Made by a program: the position numbers and the translations under genes. Shown in pieces: positions 39,748-54,694 of a DNA stretch of 64,000 nt. Position 1 is the first letter of the stretch, and each line of letters opens with the position of its first letter. The stretch is taken from contig BQFW01000010.1 of NCBI GenBank assembly GCA_020891255.1, positions 868,001-932,000 of the forward strand. Direction: 5' to 3'. Source of the stretch: Entomortierella parvispora E1425. Its lineage: Eukaryota; Fungi; Mortierellomycota. A model generated the notes under the pieces. It was not told where the DNA came from, made no database searches, and saw only the letters and a list, made by a program, of their open reading frames with translations.

Positions 39748-41181
39748 ATGTCGTCGCCCACAGCCGGACTCGGGCGGAAAAAGGACAGTGGGATGAACTT
39801 GGACAGGAATAGCAACAGTGAAGGAGATTCTTCTCCGTCATTGTCTGCTCAAGCATCTAGGACAGCCTCGACAAGCCTGTCATCGCTTGCAACCATGCGC
39901 GCCTCCCAGAGTTCTCCCACAACTAACACCGGCACCGGCACTAGTGCGCCCTCTCCGTCGCAACGGCCATCCCTCACATCACTGGCCTCTAATACTGGAT
40001 CGTTATCATCGCGACCTGGTCTTTCATCATTCGGAGCAAGCTCGAAAGGTATCTCCGGAGGATTGGGCTCCAGACCGTCTTTGACAGCACTGGCGAGGAG
40101 CGCTAGTCCAGCGCATGGAGCCCAGTCAACAGCATCAGGTGCTACACCATCACGACCACCGCTAAGTCAGCTTTTGGCGAATAGGTCTTCTACAGGTGCA
40201 GTAGGAACGATGCCGTCGACAAGCGCTGCACTTCCTCCACGACGGTCGCTTGTTGGTTTGGCAAAAGTGGGGTCCGGATCAGATCCAAATTCGAAAATAT
40301 CTCCTAATGTGCCATCATCGACTGTGGCTTCAACTGCAAACAAATCAGAACCACAATCAGGCACAGCAGAGCCAAAGTCTTCCCCTACGGTTGGATTAGC
40401 AGTGCGTTCCGGACCGTCGCTATCAGGACCTTCGGTTTTGTCTGGATTAGGAGGACTGTCCGGTCTTGCTCGAAACAGTGGGTTAGGTAGCAATGGAGGA
40501 GGCGGTCTTAGAGGGGGTCTAGGAGGTGGTATCCAGGTACAATCAAGCTTGAGTGGTACATTGGGATCTCCAAGTTCACCTTCTTTATCCGGATTAGCCT
40601 CGAGATCATTACAGTCGCGCGCCTCGCCTTCCTTGGCAGGACTCTCCAAACGGACAGAGTCTAGTTCGATTGCCACGTATACCCAGGATCGAACAACAGA
40701 CCCCCAGCAGGCGCAATTGGAAGACAAGAGTGTGGCTCAAGAGGAGCGAGATTTTTCATCACCCTCCCATTCAGACTTTAAGGACGACTCGGCTGCATAC
40801 GGACAGGAGTCCAACGAAGCGTTTGCGACTATGGCAGAGCAATTTGCGGCGACTTCTCCGTTTTCAACCCTGATCGCAAAACCATCACATTTTGCCATCT
40901 CAATTTTTGAGCGCCTAGACCCTGTTCCAGTACCACTAGCCGTAGAAACTGCAGCCAGAGTTGCCTCCTTCGAACCCTCATCCCTGTCGCGTGATTCAGA
41001 CACAGCGGAAATAGCTGCTGCTAATAAGATTGCCACTGGAGTGTCAAAGTCAGCTCGGACTGCAGAGGCTGAGGCCTGTGTTCGCGCCAAGGCATTCCAA
41101 TTCGATCAACCTAGTCCGGACGATATTGTATTTAAAGCACAAGGGTCTCGCGCAACTGTTATCGGGATCGGAAATCGATAG
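39748..41181 (+). CDS. Ski7/HBS1L-v3-like SKI-exosome adaptor without a GTPase domain
   Basis: S/G-rich disordered body. C-terminal KPSHFAISI and FQFDQPSPDDIVFKAQ resemble the RxxxFxxxL and PFDFxxPSPDDIV motifs of HBS1Lv3/Ski7. AATAAA follows the stop. Confidence 0.7.
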   Translation: MSSPTAGLGRKKDSGMNLDRNSNSEGDSSPSLSAQASRTASTSLSSLATMRASQSSPTTNTGTGTSAPSPSQRPSLTSLASNTGSLSSRPGLSSFGASSKGISGGLGSRPSLTALARSASPAHGAQSTASGATPSRPPLSQLLANRSSTGAVGTMPSTSAALPPRRSLVGLAKVGSGSDPNSKISPNVPSSTVASTANKSEPQSGTAEPKSSPTVGLAVRSGPSLSGPSVLSGLGGLSGLARNSGLGSNGGGGLRGGLGGGIQVQSSLSGTLGSPSSPSLSGLASRSLQSRASPSLAGLSKRTESSSIATYTQDRTTDPQQAQLEDKSVAQEERDFSSPSHSDFKDDSAAYGQESNEAFATMAEQFAATSPFSTLIAKPSHFAISIFERLDPVPVPLAVETAARVASFEPSSLSRDSDTAEIAAANKIATGVSKSARTAEAEACVRAKAFQFDQPSPDDIVFKAQGSRATVIGIGNR

Positions 41182-41435: not shown

Positions 41436-42416
41436 GCGCGTTGCACTCTCAGCCGATGCATCGTCTTCGACGCGGGGCTGGCTGTCCGTATCATTATCCA
41501 GTGGATTAGGTATACAAATTCTCAAAGCCACAATCATAAGGTAGCATGTAGGTGGTTGATTACAGGGGTTCAACAGCATTGGTTCCTATTTGGACACAGT
41601 GTCGGCCTGGTCAATTTATTGGCTTGTATTTATCAATCGTACGAAGGAAACGAAGATGTAAACGATCTATTTGCTCGCTTTTTAGATGCAGCAATCAGGG
41701 CGGAATTGGGTTCCAGGGCCGGCGGCACCGCAGGGGCACTTGGGGTACACAGCCTCGACCTCGGCGACAGGGGCAGAGGGGGCAGCGTGGGCAACAATAG
41801 CCACGAGAGCAAGGAGGGCGACGGTGTAGAACTTCATGTTGGATTGGGTGGTTGGAGTGGTTTGGTTGGTTTGGGATGAGGTGCAGGTTGAACGTCAATC
41901 CAACGGTATTTATACCTTTCAAAGACTGTTGTCAAATTCTTTCCAGAAAAAAAAAAAAAAAGCTCTGGTGTCAACCACAAGTTGCCTCCGAGATGTCGGC
42001 TTTGGCATGATTGATAGGATTTACTTGTTATGACTTTTGCGGAATGAGCATTTTTGCAACGGAAGTGACATCCGTTGGCGACATCTGATCGAGCAGTTGT
42101 CGTCTGGATCTCTGTGCCGCGCCCTACACCGTGGGACTTCCCCGTGGGACTTCCCCATGAGTCTTGTGTGTTGACTGGAGATGCATTCAGTTCTCTCACA
42201 CCATTCGCGCCGGAAGAACGACCGGTTCACCTCCAGTCTCTCGCTCTCGCCCCCGAAAGGCAAAAAATATGCAACAGTATTTTTTCGTGTTGTGTAACGC
42301 GTGCAGGACCAGAGAGCGGACATAGAGCCAGTGAGCAACTCTTCCCCTCAATGGGCTTTTTGTTTTTCAGAGAACAAAGAGGGCACGAAGACACGACAAG
42401 TACACAGTATCTATTT
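41436..42416 (-). repeat. Left arm of a ~980-bp inverted duplication (partner 44327-45313)
   Basis: The reverse complement aligns by eye with 44327-45313. It is nearly identical in the core and more diverged at both ends. Confidence 0.95.
41682..41837 (-). CDS. Small secreted Cys-rich prepropeptide, copy A (51 aa): MKFYTVALLALVAIVAHAAPSAPVAEVEAVYPKCPCGAAGPGTQFRPDCCI
   Basis: Signal-peptide-like N-terminus, CAACATG context, TATA box (TATAAATA at 41914-41907) and strongly C-ending codons. It is below the ORF-track size cut-off. Confidence 0.88.
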   Translation of the reverse strand: MKFYTVALLALVAIVAHAAPSAPVAEVEAVYPKCPCGAAGPGTQFRPDCCI

Positions 42417-43821
42417 AGCTGTGGCACTCAACAGGCTTCCACTTGAATCGACCTACATTTTTTTTATATTTTGTGCTCGAATCCTGGGAGTGTCTATTTG
42501 TTGTCTGGCCTGATAGCCCTTGACTCGCTATACCCCATATCGGTGGATGTGGTCTGCAGGTTCATTCTTGGCCGTTGCATTTTAGTCCGCAGACACAATT
42601 GCAAATTTTTTCGTTTTGTATACCTCTTTCCCACGGACACAGTGCGTTTGTTCATTGAGGCACAGGACAAACACCCAGACAGACCTCCTTTGATATGAGA
42701 GCCGTATGAGAGGGCTAAGTGATGGACATAGGGGAGAGACTCGCTCACAGCAACGGGAAGGTGGAAGCTAGGTTCATGTATCCGACGATAAACATGATTT
42801 CCATTGTTTTTCTGAGAACAATAGAAAAGTTCAGCTGACCCCCTTTTTTTTTGTGTGTGGTAGTAAAAGTTCAAAGGTTTTTCGAAAGTGCTCGTGTTCT
42901 TGAAGGATCGGGAGAAGGGGAGCAATTGTTGCATATGGATGAGCGGTGAACAAGCAAGAAAATCCAGTTTTTTTATAATATGCGTCCTCCTTTCTTGTGT
43001 GCCCAAGAAAATCACTTTCTTGATTCTTTGAGTTGATTGGCCTTTCTTTCGTTTTTGTGTAACGATTCTCGCTGGAAAGCTGATTTCCAGAGAGAATCAA
43101 AAAGTGATTCTCTTGGGCACAAAAGAAAGGAGGGCGGTTAATGATTCCAGTCAGCCGTTTCCTACAGTGCTGCCATCGCACCATCAATGGGCGAACTTTG
43201 GAGAAGGCTCAAGAGCAAATTTCAAGAGCAAAGATCAGGGGTAAATGCAGGGGTAAAGTCAGTCTAGCAGAGACCTGGCTTAGTGGCGAAGACAACACAC
43301 GGATTACTTGTGAAGCACACCAGCAAGGTGCAAGTCTATTGGACAGGCCAACAAATAAACACGTCCCCTCTGCGATTTTCGAAGGCGAGATAGACTAGAG
43401 TCTGGAGCATGACCAGGGCGCGGTGCGGAAATCCAGACGACCATTAAGGTATTGGCCGACAAATAATGAGAAGGGTCCATCTGTCGTCTTTAGTCTGACA
43501 GCCCTCCATGCTTGCCGTCCGATGTTCTCTTGTTTGTCGCTTGAAGCTCTCGTATTTGTGTTCAGAATTTCTGCACCGCGCCCTTGGTCATGGTCGCAAA
43601 ATCATTTTGTCCAACTGGTCATTTTTGGATGTTTAGAGTTGAAATCTCCCATGCAATAACTTTAATCCAATTTTTGGGTAAGGCCAAGGGTTCAGCTGCA
43701 CTTGCAGCAGCATTTAAACCAATCAAGATCAATGGACGGACTGCGATCACAAGCTTGGAGTCTATGCCGGGCTACAAATAAGAGCAGTTTCACGGTCAAC
43801 ACGCAGGGGAAAGAGGTTTGG

Positions 43822-43893
43822 CGGAATAGAAAGAATATTGTGAGCACAGATGGGGAACTCGGAATAGAAAGAATATTGTGAGCACAGATGGGG
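43822..43893. repeat. Two-copy tandem repeat, period 38 bp
   Basis: CGGAATAGAAAGAATATTGTGAGCACAGATGGG starts at 43822 and again at 43860. Confidence 0.9.
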
Positions 43894-44326
43894 AGCTAGC
43901 TAGGGCACGGCGGGGTTTACACTACGAGATGGATGGGTCCCGCACTGGTTTTGAACGTGGACAAAAAGTCAGAGGAGAACCTGATAGATCCTGATGTGGC
44001 TATTACAAGGGTCTAGTGGCGAGATGAACCTAAGGGTGAGTGTAGGGATTACGTTATCGATAGAAGAACGACATAATGGCTAGGGCAACAGCGTTTGGAA
44101 TGGCAGGGATCCGCAGGGACAGAAATCGATCTATGCCCCTTCGTCAACCTTCCTTCCCTCCTTTTTCTTCTCTTCTTCTTCACTCCTTCTCTGCGGACAG
44201 AAGACGGTCAGGATTTGAGGCGTCATTCCTATGAGCTCGAGTGCAGATACTGGGAAAAGACTAGCGACGCGTACAAAAGGTCGCTGTAGGTTCAGGTTAA
44301 GCACCAAAAAAAAGGGTGTGCATGAC

Positions 44327-45313
44327 AAATAGATAATGTACTTACCGTGTCCTGGTGTCCGCTTTGTTCCCTTAAAAACAAAAAGCCCAATGAGGGAAAG
44401 AGTTGCTCAACTCTCTTTCTGGCTCTCTGTCCGCTCTCTGGCCCTGAACGCGCGTTACACAACACGAGAAAATACTGTTGCATATTTTTTTCCTTTCGGG
44501 GGGGAGAGCGAGAAACTGGAGGTGAACCGGTCGTTCTTCCGGCGCGAATGGTGTGAGAGAACTGAATGCATCTCCAGTCAACACACAAGACTCATGGGGA
44601 AGTCCCACGGGGAAGTCCCACGGTGTAGGGCGCGGCACAGAGATCCAGACGACAACTGCTCGATCAGATGTCGCCAACGGATGTCACTTCCGTTGCAAAA
44701 ATGCTCATTCCGCAAAAGTCATAACAAGTAAATCCTATCAATCATGCCAAAGCCGACATCTCGGAGGCAACTTGTGGTTGACACCAGAGCTTTTTTTTTT
44801 TTTTTTCTGGAAAGAATTTGACAACAGTCTTTGAAAGGTATAAATACCGTTGGATTGACGTTCAACCTGCACCTCATCCCAAACCAACCAAACCACTCCA
44901 ACCACCCAATCCAACATGAAGTTCTACACCGTCGCCCTCCTTGCTCTCGTGGCTATTGTTGCCCACGCTGCCCCCTCTGCCCCTGTCGCCGAGGTCGAGG
45001 CTGTGTACCCCAAGTGCCCCTGCGGTGCCGCCGGCCCTGGAACCAAATTTCGCCCTGATTGCTGCATCTAAAAAGCGAGCAAATAGATCGTTTACATCTT
45101 CATTTCCTACGAGCGATTGATAAATACAAGCCAATAAATTGGCCAGGCAGACATTGTGTCCAAATAGGAACCAATGCTGTTGAACCCCTCTAATCAACCA
45201 CCTACATGCTACCTTATGATCGTGGCTTTGTTTGTATACCTAATCCACTGGATAATGATACGGACAGCCAGCCTCGCGTCGAAGAAGCTGCACCGGTTGA
45301 GGCTGCAACGCGC
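44327..45313 (+). repeat. Right arm of the inverted duplication
   Basis: Matches the reverse complement of 41436-42416. Confidence 0.95.
44916..45071 (+). CDS. Small secreted Cys-rich prepropeptide, copy B (51 aa; K44 instead of Q44)
   Basis: Identical to copy A except 2 nt (CAA>AAA, TTC>TTT). TATAAATA at 44839-44846. Confidence 0.88.
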   Translation: MKFYTVALLALVAIVAHAAPSAPVAEVEAVYPKCPCGAAGPGTKFRPDCCI

Positions 45314-45873
45314 CGTCGGAAGGAGTGCAGTCAGATGATGATGCAGTCATGGAAATTGGCAACGAGATTTCTGGAGATACAGATCCAGAACGCGACCCAT
45401 TAAGGAATGTGCAGAATGTGTGATCCAAGAGTTATCTGTACGGCTTGGGGAGCTAGCTGCGCTCCACGGCAGTTTGTTGCAAAAAAGATGACCGATAAGT
45501 GCGTTCTGGGCAGGGCAATCTTTAGTGCAGTGCCGCTGTTTCTACTCTTTTTTGCTTCATCGTCATCGTAGTTATTTGTCCTTTGATATTGCCCCTTGCT
45601 CTGCGAGCGACCGTGAATGATCCTCCATGACGGGACGCATGGGGAGGTAGATTCTAAGAAAGGGGTTTGTAGATAAGGAAAAAGAAGAGGAAGAAGAAAA
45701 GAAGAGGAAATGAAAGACCAGGAACACAGATCGCTTCCAGGGGCGAAACAAAAAAAAAAGTTCGTTTTTGGTGGTGTGAACTTCCCCAGCTACTCCGACC
45801 CATCCCCATGTGAGCACGGTCTTTGACGCGCCAATATTGCGCGTCCCTTCCGCTGGCGCTTGAACGGAGTTTA

Positions 45874-48140
45874 TTAGTTTAACAGCAAGTGGACGGCGTG
45901 AGAGGGCACGCCGTTATTCAACATGTGGATGTAGTGAGGACCCGGGGGCATGATGTTGGCGTTGGGGGGCATGTCGACCTCATAGGTGAACTTTGTTCCA
46001 GAAGTCGAGTTTCCATCCTTCAAGGCTGCCACGAGCTTAGTCATCCGCTGGGACATGTGTGTGCTATGGGTCACAAACCCTTTGTGGCCCAACATAAATA
46101 CGACCTCGGGTTCGTATCGGCTCACGTCCTTCAGATCTGCTACCAGCTCCAGCTTCTGAGCATAGGTCACCGGTACAGGTTTGGCATCATTCGTCGTCAC
46201 CTTGTTTTGAAAGAACCCCTCGGTCAAGACAATCTCGGGGCGGGCCAGATCTGTGGTCAGGTAAGGCGGCGTGAATGACTCGACTCTGAATTCAGTGGGG
46301 AAACGAACATAGGGCTCCTGATGAAGCGACAACTTGGTATGCACGCCATTGTTCTCGTTCGAACCTGCGACAAAGACGGAGCCATCAGGTAACATCATGG
46401 CCACAGAGTGATACATTCTAGCAATGTTACTGGAGGCCCACTCCGTAAATCGTGATCCCAGAGGTGCCTGAGGATCATACATCAATGGAGTATAGTTGGG
46501 ATCGTTGCCATGCAAGAATCCAGCGAAACCAGTCTGGCAACCATTGAGAAGCATGACTTTGCCATCGGCTAAGATGATAGCATCGCCCATCAAGCGACGA
46601 CTGGGCATCTCGTCCATCTCCCACTGAGGGTCTGGATCTGCCAAATTGATGCGTCCACAGGTTTGCAAGGCCTTTGCGTTTTTATCCATACGTTCTGACC
46701 CTCCACAGACCAAGATTTCGTGCGCGTAGCCCTTGGCAGGATCGAGGGGCAAGAGCACATGGGAGCCTGTCAAGGGATACGAGCGAGATCCTCCAGGTAT
46801 ATCAGGCAATCGACGCACGATCTCGTTTCGGGCTACGTTGAAGATCATCGACCTTGTGTTGGCAAAGATGTAAATGTCTCCACTTGGCAGCGAGTATACG
46901 TTCGGGTACAAGTTGTTGGGCAGAGTATCAACCATGAACTGCATGAAAACGGGCTTGTAATCCGCGGCCGGCTTGGGTTTAGGGTACAGCTCCCACGTCG
47001 GGTTATTGAGTACGTTGGTGTTGATCGCTAGAGATTGGTTGCTGCCTCCCAGGATAAAGAGCTCTCCAGAAGGGAGCGTCGTGATGGACACGTACCAGCG
47101 ATTGCTGGTCATCAGCCACTCGCGGTCGTTCGGGTTCTCGATCCATTCTCCGCAGTTCTCGCCTTCACAGGGCAACCACATTCTCAAGGACTGAAAACCA
47201 TCCTGACACCCGATGGCCTTTGACTTACAGTACTCAGCACCCCCACCGCTGATGAAAGTGCCGTTGGGCAAGAACCCTCCACCCGAGCAAAAGGTGTTGG
47301 TCTTTACTTCCAATGGTCTGAAGTCGTTGCGGATCAGGTCGTACTCGGCATTGTAGGCATTGAGACCGTTGGGGAGCTTGGCAGGATTGGCCTCGGCCCT
47401 ATCCATGATTAAAATCTTGGTAGGCGAGATCAAGACAATGTGTTGAGCCGTTACACCGCTCTGGCCCACGACCTTGAACACTCCCTTAGGCAGGGAAGGG
47501 ATTGGTTTGGGGTTTCTACTGTTTGCGGTGATATGGCTCATGTAGAAGCGTTCGCATCGATTGTTGTAGCTTGCTGATGCATTACATCCTGCACTGCAGG
47601 CCAGAGGCGAATTACCGCAGTGACCATGCTTCGAATGGAAATGGGCGAAAGTAAACAATATTAAAAAAAATTAAAAAAAAATAAGAAACTGGGGTCAGAT
47701 CGAGTGTGAAATCGTGGATGCAGAATAGCTGAGTTGTTGAGTCAAGCTGTAACCAGACAAACAGTCAATTCAGTCGAACAAAAGTAAAATGGGCTGTTGT
47801 TGGTGTCTGGAATCTGAAATCTGAGAGCGGTCGTTGGGGTGAGCGTTAGAGCAGCGAAACTGAAAGGCTCGGAACAGGAGTGCACATTGTGCACAAGACA
47901 AACGTCGAGGAATGTAAATGAGGCGCTGGGGGGAGGAGAAATGACAGAAGGACAACGGAGAGGAGGGGGAAAAAGAAAGTGGAGGATTCATTGGCTTACA
48001 GGACTGCAGCAGGGTGTCTCCTGCGGACATGCCAGACCGTTATTGAACTTGCAGCCTGCTCCGTCGGCAGGGACAGCGACGGAGACGGTAAGCAGGACAA
48101 AAGCTGTCGTTACCAGGAACCAGCCTAGTTTTAGAGTCAT
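45874..48140 (-). CDS. Secreted copper radical oxidase (CAZy AA5_1, glyoxal-oxidase-like) with an N-terminal hevein/CBM18 chitin-binding domain; exons 48140-48000 and 47628-45874
   Basis: Signal peptide MTLKLGWFLVTTAFVLLTVSVA. Splicing rebuilds C..C....CCSP|HGHCGNSPLACSAGC. Active-site motifs TFCSGG, RWY, RMYHS and FVTHS are present. Confidence 0.9.
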
Positions 48141-49217
48141 TCTGGTTGGTGACATTAACGGGGTTCGAGAGGGAGAAAGGAGGGGGACAAAGATAAGATA
48201 AATGATATAATGAAAGTGATACTATGTGGTGAATATATGGTGTGCAAGGAAACGAGTGAGCGTTAAAAGAATGGGGAGGGCAGGTAGATTGATGATACGA
48301 GGGTGTGCAAGATGGGGTAAATTGCAAGCATGAGTAGAGTGAGTGAGTAAAGTGGATTGAAAATGCAGAACGATGAAGAAGAGAGAGGCGAAAGCTTCCA
48401 GACGTCGACTCTTACGTTCAAATGCCTGGGCGCCAATGGGTAAAGTATGAGCCTAATCCTCCCTCAGTCATCACCCGGGCATTTAGGGTGCCACAATCTT
48501 TCTCATAGAGCTACCCTCCCCTTTCCTATCTTCGTTAATTCATGATTACTAACACCAGCCGATCTCAAGGACTCATCCACCTCCAAGTTTATAGATGACG
48601 GTACTGCCTGACTGGCATCCACATGTTCCTTAATATTGTCATATTGTCATGTCCACTGTGAACACAGTGCGCATCAACAAGATCAAAGGGCGATGTCTGT
48701 TCTGTTTATTGGCGGTTAAGCTGTGTGGTGGAGAGACACATCCATGGGGTTGCTGTATGTTGCTGTTCACTTTGTCTTCTGAACAGCAGAGTGACAAAGG
48801 GGAAAGAGTAAAGGATAAAAATAGACAACATCCAGAAGGACAAGGACCATCAAATGCTGCGGGCAAAATAAACAGATTAAGGTCCAGAAGACCAAGAGGG
48901 CGAAGCAAACTCTCGTCAAAAGACTTGAGAGCAATTGCCGACCCATGCGCCACAAAGAAAAAAAATAAAGACATTAATGTTTGCAGGCTGGGAAGTAAAA
49001 ACAAAATAAACACTCCTCCCTGTTCCTTACGGAAAAATGTCCTAAGTGTGTTTTCTTTGTGTATTTTTGTCCGCTAACCATTTATGAGAAAAGTCAAGCT
49101 ATCCAGACGACCTGGGTCCCAGGATTCTCATACAGCAAATAATGCCCCGACTTGTCGCCTTGTACAAGGCAAAGTGAACTACTAGTCATAACGAAGGCTT
49201 TTATTCCCCCCACCCCC

Positions 49218-53107: not shown

Positions 53108-54694
53108 ATGACCTTCTCTCTCGAGGTTGTCCGACCTATCCATCACTTAGAGCGGTACAATGTCACCCGTTCCAACGTCAAAATTTACAATAACGTAGCC
53201 ATTGGCGCCCGATTCCGGTGCTCCGAGTTACTGCAGCAACCTTTCCAAGAGGAGCGATTGTCAAGCCTGTTCTGGTCAAGGCTCCTGATCGGACCCATGA
53301 GGCAGGTTCTAGAGGCACATCCTTCCCTGGGTCTCGTCGTTGGCGATGCCTTATCCGCCCGGCCCTACTTTTTGCGCCTCCCATCCCTGGATCTCTCCAA
53401 GCAAATCCGAGTCGTCACTGTTCCTGCCACGGCGAAGTCGAACGAGGGAGGGGTGACAGCGGCGATAGAGGAGGAGCACAATCGACCTTTTGATCTGTTG
53501 GATCTTCAAGCACCTGTCTGGCGGATGGTGGTGGTCATGAATGAGGAAAAGAGCGATCTCGTCTCGTTGGTGTACACCTTTCACCATGTTATCGCAGACG
53601 GTCGATCGGCCATGGCCGTGATCGAGCTACTGTTTCAATTGCTCAACCAGCAGGCAGCCGCCACTCCTTCTATTATGAGCGATTCCTCCATCACAGACTT
53701 CACGATCACGCCTGCGCCTCGCAGACCGATACCGGAGGCCATGGAAACTCTTACCAATTGTTTTCCCTCTGTCCGAACATTGGTCTGGGAAGCGACCCGA
53801 GCGATCCTGTTGCCTTCCTTTTTGAAAAAGGCCCTGGAATCACCCTACTGGGCTGGTGATTTTGACAGTACATTGGAGGTCCCCAATGACACGCAGCTCC
53901 GGCTCCTCCGGTTCACAAAAGAAGAGACCCAACAGATCGTTCGCTCCGCCAAGGAGAGAGGGACCACAGTTCAATCCATCCTGGCCACCGCTTCCATCTT
54001 TGCTGCCGTCTTGGTGTTCATGACGGGTCTAGATAAAAAGCGAGAGCCCTTGGTCTTTGCAACCCCAGTTTCCCTCCGAGACTTGATCCATTCGCGTCCA
54101 GGTTCTACCCTCTCGGGGCCGATCCCTGCCACTGACCAAGGGAACTACACCTCCGAGATCCTTCATGAGAACATCCAAGTCGCCGAGGACAACTCGAGTT
54201 CGTTTTGGTCCATGACCGATGCATACCGTCAGCAAGTCATTCGAGGCACCAAGACGGATCGAGGTGTCCAAGAGCTTTTGGAGCATTTTGGAATGTTGGC
54301 CCTCTTGCCCAAGGACAAGGATGGTAGCTGGGAAAAGTTTATGACGGACAAGATCTTTAAGGATCAACACGGTCGCAAAGCCAGCATCAAGTTGTCCAAC
54401 CTAGGTCGAGCCTCCTGGACCACCACTTCCTCCTCTGGAGCCAGTGAGGCTGCGTTCAAGGTCGAAGACGCCTTTTTCTCTCAATCATCTGGCGTTACGG
54501 CCTCAGCCCTGACCATGAGCGTGCTGACGGTCAATGGCGTTCTGAACGTCTCTACGACTTGGCAAAAAGCCGGCTTCCAAGGCCGCGAAAGGGGTGATCG
54601 ATACGTCGAGGCCTTTAAGCAGATCTTGATGCAGGCTATCGACCCTGACCGACAAGATTATCTCTTCCGGGACTGTATTGCCTCATTTACCTGA
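53108..54694 (+). CDS. Alcohol acetyltransferase (AATase/Atf1-like CoA-dependent acyltransferase)
   Basis: HHVIADGRS (HxxxDG), LSNLG and the N-terminal RPIHHLERY in an intronless 528-aa ORF. Confidence 0.85.
   Translation: MTFSLEVVRPIHHLERYNVTRSNVKIYNNVAIGARFRCSELLQQPFQEERLSSLFWSRLLIGPMRQVLEAHPSLGLVVGDALSARPYFLRLPSLDLSKQIRVVTVPATAKSNEGGVTAAIEEEHNRPFDLLDLQAPVWRMVVVMNEEKSDLVSLVYTFHHVIADGRSAMAVIELLFQLLNQQAAATPSIMSDSSITDFTITPAPRRPIPEAMETLTNCFPSVRTLVWEATRAILLPSFLKKALESPYWAGDFDSTLEVPNDTQLRLLRFTKEETQQIVRSAKERGTTVQSILATASIFAAVLVFMTGLDKKREPLVFATPVSLRDLIHSRPGSTLSGPIPATDQGNYTSEILHENIQVAEDNSSSFWSMTDAYRQQVIRGTKTDRGVQELLEHFGMLALLPKDKDGSWEKFMTDKIFKDQHGRKASIKLSNLGRASWTTTSSSGASEAAFKVEDAFFSQSSGVTASALTMSVLTVNGVLNVSTTWQKAGFQGRERGDRYVEAFKQILMQAIDPDRQDYLFRDCIASFT

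Follow-up and report, generated by a model that had tools for sequence, protein, structure and literature searches.

Two copies of an unannotated 51-codon open reading frame in Entomortierella parvispora E1425 probably encode a small secreted four-cysteine peptide

Entomortierella parvispora E1425 is a soil fungus that carries a Mycoavidus endobacterium (PMC8759367). In a 64,000-nt stretch of its contig BQFW01000010.1 (positions 868,001 to 932,000, hereafter the window), two open reading frames (ORFs) of 51 codons lie head-to-head inside the roughly 970-nt arms of an inverted duplication. Judged from the sequence, their product probably belongs to a known kind, the small secreted cysteine peptides, and is probably lineage-restricted and conditionally expressed. 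The module consists of the following features, given in window coordinates.

41436-42404, unstranded: left arm of the inverted duplication, with 3' flank, coding sequence, 5' leader and about 570 nt of promoter (self-alignment)
41682-41837, minus strand: peptide gene, left copy, coding sequence including stop, Q43 variant (direct reading and ORF list)
41784-41837, minus strand: predicted signal-peptide codons, left copy
41685-41783, minus strand: predicted 33-amino-acid (aa) secreted part, left copy
41709-42237 (mirror 44515-45044), unstranded: substitution-free tract between the arms (arm alignment)
42405-44336, unstranded: unique spacer between the two promoters, about 1.9 kb
44337-45313, unstranded: right arm, mirror of the left arm (self-alignment)
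44916-45071, plus strand: peptide gene, right copy, coding sequence including stop, K43 variant (direct reading and ORF list)
44916-44969, plus strand: predicted signal-peptide codons, right copy
44970-45068, plus strand: predicted 33-aa secreted part, right copy

Both ORFs start with ATG and encode a 51-aa product, and direct reading found no in-frame alternative start upstream of either. Residues 1 to 18 comprise a basic residue (K2), a 14-residue uncharged hydrophobic stretch (mean Kyte-Doolittle value of 2.6) and A-H-A before the likely cleavage point. Both copies passed a crude signal-peptide filter, as did only 65 of 1,129 small ORFs, and reading agreed with this heuristic assignment (K2, 14-residue h-region, A-x-A at -3/-1). 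The signal-like N terminus is followed by the spacer APSAPVAEVEA and then by a 22-residue C-terminal core with cysteines at 34, 36, 49 and 50, an arrangement of C-x-C-x12-C-C that ends in D-C-C-I and the stop. Direct reading of residues 19 to 51 showed no second hydrophobic segment and no end of the endoplasmic reticulum (ER) retention or GPI type. The coding sequences of the two copies differ at two bases, CAA/AAA, which gives Q43K in the inter-cysteine loop as the only amino acid difference, and TTC/TTT, which is synonymous. The predicted mature peptide has 33 residues, of which four (12%) are cysteines, with a mass of 3301.8 Da when oxidised with two disulfides. Its computed isoelectric point is 4.7 for the Q form and 6.2 for the K form, with a net charge of about -1 to 0.

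The preliminary description of this DNA had proposed a signal-pro-mature organisation with a core of about 2.2 kDa. This part is not supported, because the 51 residues contain no dibasic pair (KR/RR) and no other recognisable processing site lies between spacer and core. The released product may thus be the whole 33-residue peptide (3.3 kDa), and release of a separate 2.3-kDa core, with a computed mass of 2279.6 Da, would be a guess. Stepwise trimming of the spacer by a dipeptidyl peptidase is not proposed, because the X-Pro/X-Ala pattern breaks after two steps.

Codon usage is the best evidence that the ORFs are a real gene. The codon adaptation index (CAI) was calculated against TEF1 (two copies), GAPDH and actin (two copies) of the same genome, and comparison ORFs were taken from 264 kb, comprising the window and twenty 10-kb samples from 14 other contigs. 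The CAI values were 0.53 for the left copy and 0.50 for the right copy, compared with 0.75 to 0.80 for the reference genes and 0.18 to 0.30 for ordinary genes of the window (a glyoxal oxidase gene, an acyltransferase-like gene and a bZIP gene). Among the 1,129 ATG-initiated ORFs of 40 to 100 aa (median, 0.11; 99th percentile, 0.27), the two copies ranked first and second, and they also exceeded all 51 ORFs of at least 250 aa, whose maximum was 0.47. The bias is specific to one frame, with values of 0.03 to 0.14 in the other five frames of the same DNA. When the synonymous codons were resampled from ordinary-gene usage, the CAI was 0.20 ± 0.056 and none of 5,000 draws reached 0.50, which places the peptide about 5 standard deviations above the ordinary-gene expectation. 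Third codon positions are occupied by C in 28 cases, T in 14, G in 7 and A in 2. The remaining small ORFs with high CAI were recognisable exons of real genes, indicating that the index behaves as intended. As a separate observation, the CAI relative to TEF1, GAPDH and actin cleanly divided real exons from chance small ORFs in the window and the 20 sampled 10-kb stretches.

Signals of the kind expected around a short gene were found by direct reading on both sides of the ORF.

44839-44846, plus strand: TATA box TATAAATA, 77 nt upstream of the right-copy ATG
41907-41914, minus strand: TATA box of the left copy, mirror of TATAAATA
45133-45138 (mirror 41615-41620), plus strand: AATAAA, candidate poly(A) signal, 62 nt past the right-copy stop
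44596-44621 (mirror 42131-42156), plus strand: two perfect tandem copies of the 13-mer GGGGAAGTCCCAC, about 300 nt before the right-copy ATG

A run of 16 T lies directly upstream of the TATA box (44791-44806 in the right copy), and both arms carry such a run. The leader is C/A-rich with A at -3 of the peptide ATG, and no upstream ATG occurs in it. The tandem 13-mer falls in a stretch where the two arms are identical and is possibly a paired binding site for a regulator. A longer spliced gene was considered and rejected: no GT donor of the GTRNGT type occurs inside the peptide ORF, AATAAA lies beyond its stop, and an ORF of 107 aa on the opposite strand starts with TTG and has a CAI of 0.09. 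The TATA box, T-tract, A at -3 and AATAAA fit one small unspliced gene per arm. Taken jointly, the frame-specific codon bias, the signal-peptide layout, the start context, the TATA box and the poly(A) signal are best read as those of a translated gene, and the ORFs are probably a real gene. The preliminary description had reported two 51-aa ORFs between 41682 and 45071 with a signal-peptide N terminus, the same spacer and four-cysteine core, a single Q/K difference in the inter-cysteine loop, a TATA box for each copy and highly biased codons; on all of these points our results agree with it.

The peptide gene occurs exactly twice in the 38.9-Mb genome, and its copies, lying in the two arms of a single inverted duplication, are not independent loci. 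Each arm comprises about 250 nt of 3' flank, the coding sequence, 77 nt from TATA box to ATG and about 500 nt further upstream, and the arms were found nowhere else in the genome. What had initially been called a family is, in effect, a single local inverted duplication whose copies appear to have been kept alike by gene conversion. The substitution-free tract runs across codons 1 to 42 and the leader into about 400 nt of the promoter; its sole difference is one base in a homopolymer run. The arms diverge by 6 to 10% at both arm ends flanking the tract, and this rate predicts 35 to 50 changes across its 529 nt. Because so many changes would be expected, the tract is read as the product of a recent gene conversion and not of constraint.

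The unique spacer between the arms contains no long ORF with a family match and no Rfam match. It holds a 154-bp element resembling a miniature inverted-repeat transposable element (MITE), with 36-nt terminal inverted repeats that are 92% complementary; at least 40 copies of this element, 75 to 95% identical, are spread over most contigs of the genome. A 38-nt tandem duplication is also present, as is a second small inverted repeat (43415-43446 and 43553-43584), which may be another degraded MITE. The 3.9-kb module as a whole was considered as a transposon with long terminal inverted repeats, and this was rejected because the genome contains the module only once and no matching target-site duplication flanks its arms. 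The features of the spacer and the neighbouring genes are listed below.

39748-41181: left neighbour, an annotated 477-aa hypothetical protein with no Pfam domain and relatives only in Mortierellaceae
42983-43136: MITE-like element in the spacer
43822-43897: 38-nt tandem duplication in the spacer, 97% identical
45874-47658, minus strand: glyoxal oxidase (GLOX) paralogue, a copper-radical oxidase (Pfam PF07250, 1.1e-48; PF09118)
53108-54694: condensation/alcohol-acetyltransferase-like gene, 8 kb from the peptide gene

The right peptide copy ends 800 nt from the GLOX gene. The window GLOX is 91% identical in amino acid sequence to EMPS_09496, which is encoded at 100% on contig 13 of the same genome. 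Positions 45860-48965 of the window align at 81% nucleotide identity to positions 920613-924128 of contig 13, in an alignment that ends exactly with the GLOX stop codon. This duplicated segment, which includes about 1.3 kb upstream of the gene, ends 550 nt from the inverted module. The contig-13 copy is collinear with Gryganskiella cystojenkinii in the order EST1, GLOX, S10 peptidase, arrestin and P-type ATPase; by this comparison, the contig-13 GLOX is taken as the ancestral copy and the window GLOX as the derived paralogue. On contig 13, about 5.4 kb (915215-920612) separates GLOX from the S10 peptidase gene, compared with about 0.4 kb in G. cystojenkinii, which marks an insertion there.

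On the other side, the left neighbour showed 57% identity to its Gryganskiella relative over 39% of the query. For the relatives in Mortierella alpina, Haplosporangium, Lobosporangium and Dissophora, identity was 34 to 46%, and between a quarter and a third of the query was aligned. The G. cystojenkinii contig JAAAIG010000738.1 carries the left-neighbour orthologue with the same upstream genes and ends 287 nt after the gene. This end corresponds to the point where the inverted module begins in E. parvispora, and the equivalent position of the peptide falls outside the contig; a repeat may break the Gryganskiella assembly at this point. No related ORF was found at the contig-13 GLOX locus, at its Gryganskiella counterpart, on a related metagenome contig or at the loci around relatives of the left neighbour. 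The GLOX duplication and the lack of a peptide ORF at these loci indicate that the peptide module lies in a recently rearranged stretch and that its link to GLOX is not ancestral.

Next, we searched for relatives of the peptide. It was absent from the public protein collections examined by word search and from the gene-position collection, in which both forms were looked up exactly, in line with its first description as unannotated. A phmmer search against 1.84 billion representative proteins gave no match, although a 51-aa query misses the E value of 0.001 much below about 60% identity. Pfam, searched at E values up to 10, gave only a signal-peptide-level match to PF10917 (E = 0.12). The PDB sequences, also searched at E values up to 10, gave no match, nor did the ESM Atlas, searched with the whole peptide and with the mature part. 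The peptide thus matches no named family in these four collections, as had been supposed. A scan of JGI metagenomes gave 598 pattern matches, none of which was confirmed, and a DNA pattern of the cysteine framework gave 494 matches in the E. parvispora genome itself, which were swamped by CTG/CAG repeats. Because the protein libraries lack unannotated micro-ORFs, the blank protein searches are weak evidence. Furthermore, selection for translational efficiency takes time, and the gene is therefore probably older than the absence of homologues suggests; relatives should exist, unannotated, in other Mortierellaceae.

Several results nevertheless weigh against a real gene, and they define the strongest alternative, in which a structurally young, pyrimidine-rich inverted repeat happens to contain an open frame that is translated in neither arm. 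No homologue was found in any search made. The RNA-guided AUGUSTUS annotation of the strain did not call the gene, and a search for RNA runs covering 44700-45300 listed none. Gene conversion homogenises codons 1 to 42, so the intactness of both copies means little and does not count as independent evidence; the last 9 codons, the only diverged part of the coding sequence, differ by one replacement and one silent change, close to the rate seen in the flanks, and are uninformative on selection. A single-sequence AlphaFold model of the peptide was unreliable (predicted local distance difference test score, 64; predicted template modelling score, 0.26) and was not used. In addition, the locus is a patchwork of recent events, with the inverted duplication, the MITE and the nearby GLOX segment. 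However, a chance frame would have to top 1,129 small ORFs in CAI, stand above every long ORF sampled and do so in one frame only at 5 standard deviations. It would also have to begin at an ATG with a favourable start context, show the layout of a signal peptide and happen to lie between a TATA box at -77 and AATAAA at +62. We consider a chance frame unlikely, though it deserves more weight than any other alternative discussed below. The best explanation overall, to which we assign a probability of about 0.6, is one real unspliced micro-gene, present in two copies, for a condition-induced extracellular peptide.

If the gene is real, its product is likely a secreted disulfide peptide, and its working may be outlined as follows. 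The TATA promoter of each copy would give an mRNA of about 300 nt with the short C/A-rich leader and the poly(A) signal, predicted to span roughly 44.88 to 45.16 kb on the plus strand and 41.60 to 41.87 kb on the minus strand. The codon usage predicts heavy translation when the gene is on. The 51-aa product would enter the ER co-translationally through its 18-residue signal peptide, and signal peptidase would cleave behind A-H-A. Cys49 and Cys50 are adjacent and hardly able to pair with each other, which suggests disulfides to Cys34 and Cys36; these two bonds would probably clamp the Gly/Pro-rich 12-residue loop, and a peptide of about 33 residues (3.3 kDa) would be secreted. Stranded RNA sequencing data of E. 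parvispora E1425 exist (DRA013164; 7.4 Gb, from an endobacterium-cured line in half-strength CMMY; PMC8759367), and the RNA blank is a weak hint of silence during vegetative growth in culture. Such heavily optimised codons in a gene with no visible transcript suggest that expression is strong but conditional. The role would most likely lie in dealings with other organisms, such as defence, competition or signalling. Because the peptide is not cationic, it is a poor fit to a classical membrane-active antimicrobial, and a receptor- or target-specific role as a signal, inhibitor or toxin-like binder fits better.

The closest known systems are the small secreted cysteine-rich proteins (SSCPs) and effector-like small secreted proteins of fungi. 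They share with the peptide a signal peptide, a tiny mature part, an even number of cysteines, lineage restriction and local duplication, and they are often missed by annotation and typically expressed only under some conditions. The peptide differs in lying at the very small end of this range and in having no sequence relative, and its secretion and expression are predicted only. With a mature part of 33 residues and 4 cysteines, compared with the usual definition of fewer than 300 aa and at least 4 cysteines, the predicted product is by operational criteria a small secreted cysteine-rich peptide. The CS-alpha/beta defensins plectasin, copsin and micasin resemble it in the layout of signal, spacer and cysteine core and in being secreted peptides of soil fungi. 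In contrast, they have 6 to 8 cysteines with a CxxxC...CxC motif, their pro-peptide is marked off by a dibasic site and their mature part is cationic, whereas the peptide has 4 cysteines as CxC...CC, no dibasic site and no profile match, and is near-neutral to acidic. The toxin- or defensin-like label of the preliminary description reflects only size and cysteines. The same cysteine order (C-C-CC) in a peptide of about 20 to 30 residues behind a signal and spacer is found in conotoxin framework XVI. This resemblance is one of pattern only, and the peptide has no sequence similarity to solved or catalogued peptides (PDB sequences and the 1.84 billion representatives).

The position of the right copy next to GLOX (45874-47658) raised another explanation, a secreted thiolate peptide that binds copper for the neighbouring oxidase, for example in copper delivery or buffering. 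Cysteine pairs of the CxC and CC type are typical of sites that bind Cu(I)/Zn. However, the adjacency is not conserved, since the contig-13 GLOX locus, Gryganskiella and the metagenome relatives have no such ORF. Moreover, a metallothionein would be expected to have more than four cysteines in 33 residues, and disulfide formation is the normal fate of cysteines in the oxidising secretory pathway. Metallothionein-like peptides contain about 20 to 30% cysteine in several CxC/CC clusters and are cytosolic without a signal peptide, whereas the present peptide has a predicted signal peptide, 12% cysteine and a single CxC and a single CC pair. A copper-binding role is therefore very improbable.

A precursor of a ribosomally synthesised and post-translationally modified peptide (RiPP) or of a pheromone, whose core is excised and modified by dedicated enzymes, seems more doubtful still. 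The small precursor has a leader-like segment ahead of a short core, as a short secreted precursor it resembles the Kex2-processed repeat precursors (KEPs, alpha-factor-like), and the condensation/alcohol-acetyltransferase-like gene lies 8 kb away. However, it has a single core at the extreme C terminus, with no Kex2 site (KR/RR) and no CaaX end, and lacks the two or more repeats separated by KR/RR sites that characterise KEPs; a signal peptide is predicted at its start, and its last residues are D-C-C-I. Dikaritin-type RiPP precursors have repeated cores behind Kex2 sites and lie in clusters with UstYa/DUF3328 and oxidase genes. Here, the seven large ORFs examined in the neighbourhood, all within about 9 kb, carry GLOX, MFS, bZIP and AATase-like domains or nothing, with no UstYa/DUF3328, methyltransferase, prolyl-oligopeptidase or tyrosinase among them.

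We give least credence to the idea that the peptide manages the Mycoavidus endobacterium (PMC8759367) or other bacteria that the fungus meets, as a fungal counterpart of legume NCR and aphid BCR peptides: a signal peptide with a four-cysteine mature part of 30 to 50 residues, duplication, lineage restriction and a bacterium-bearing host are alike, and induction by bacteria only, with silence in the antibiotic-cured line from which the only public RNA sequencing data come, would explain codon optimisation without a visible transcript, but the cysteine spacing differs from the conserved 4- or 6-cysteine spacing of NCRs, no homology was found among the 1.84 billion representative proteins, and those families have hundreds of copies compared with two here.

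Returning to a condition-induced, secreted cysteine peptide as the preferred explanation, what is new here is the homologue-less, unannotated four-cysteine peptide gene pair, whereas small secreted cysteine peptides as a kind are known. Lineage-specific peptides of this kind are common in fungi, so the find is a modest one. If expressed, it would extend the secretome of a soil-common, endobacteria-bearing Mortierellaceae fungus by a micro-peptide that has neither annotation nor homologues. Gene finders systematically miss peptides of this sort, which are candidates for antimicrobials, signals or symbiosis factors. Because extreme codon adaptation picked this 51-codon ORF from more than 1,000 small ORFs, the same screen could recover other hidden micro-genes.

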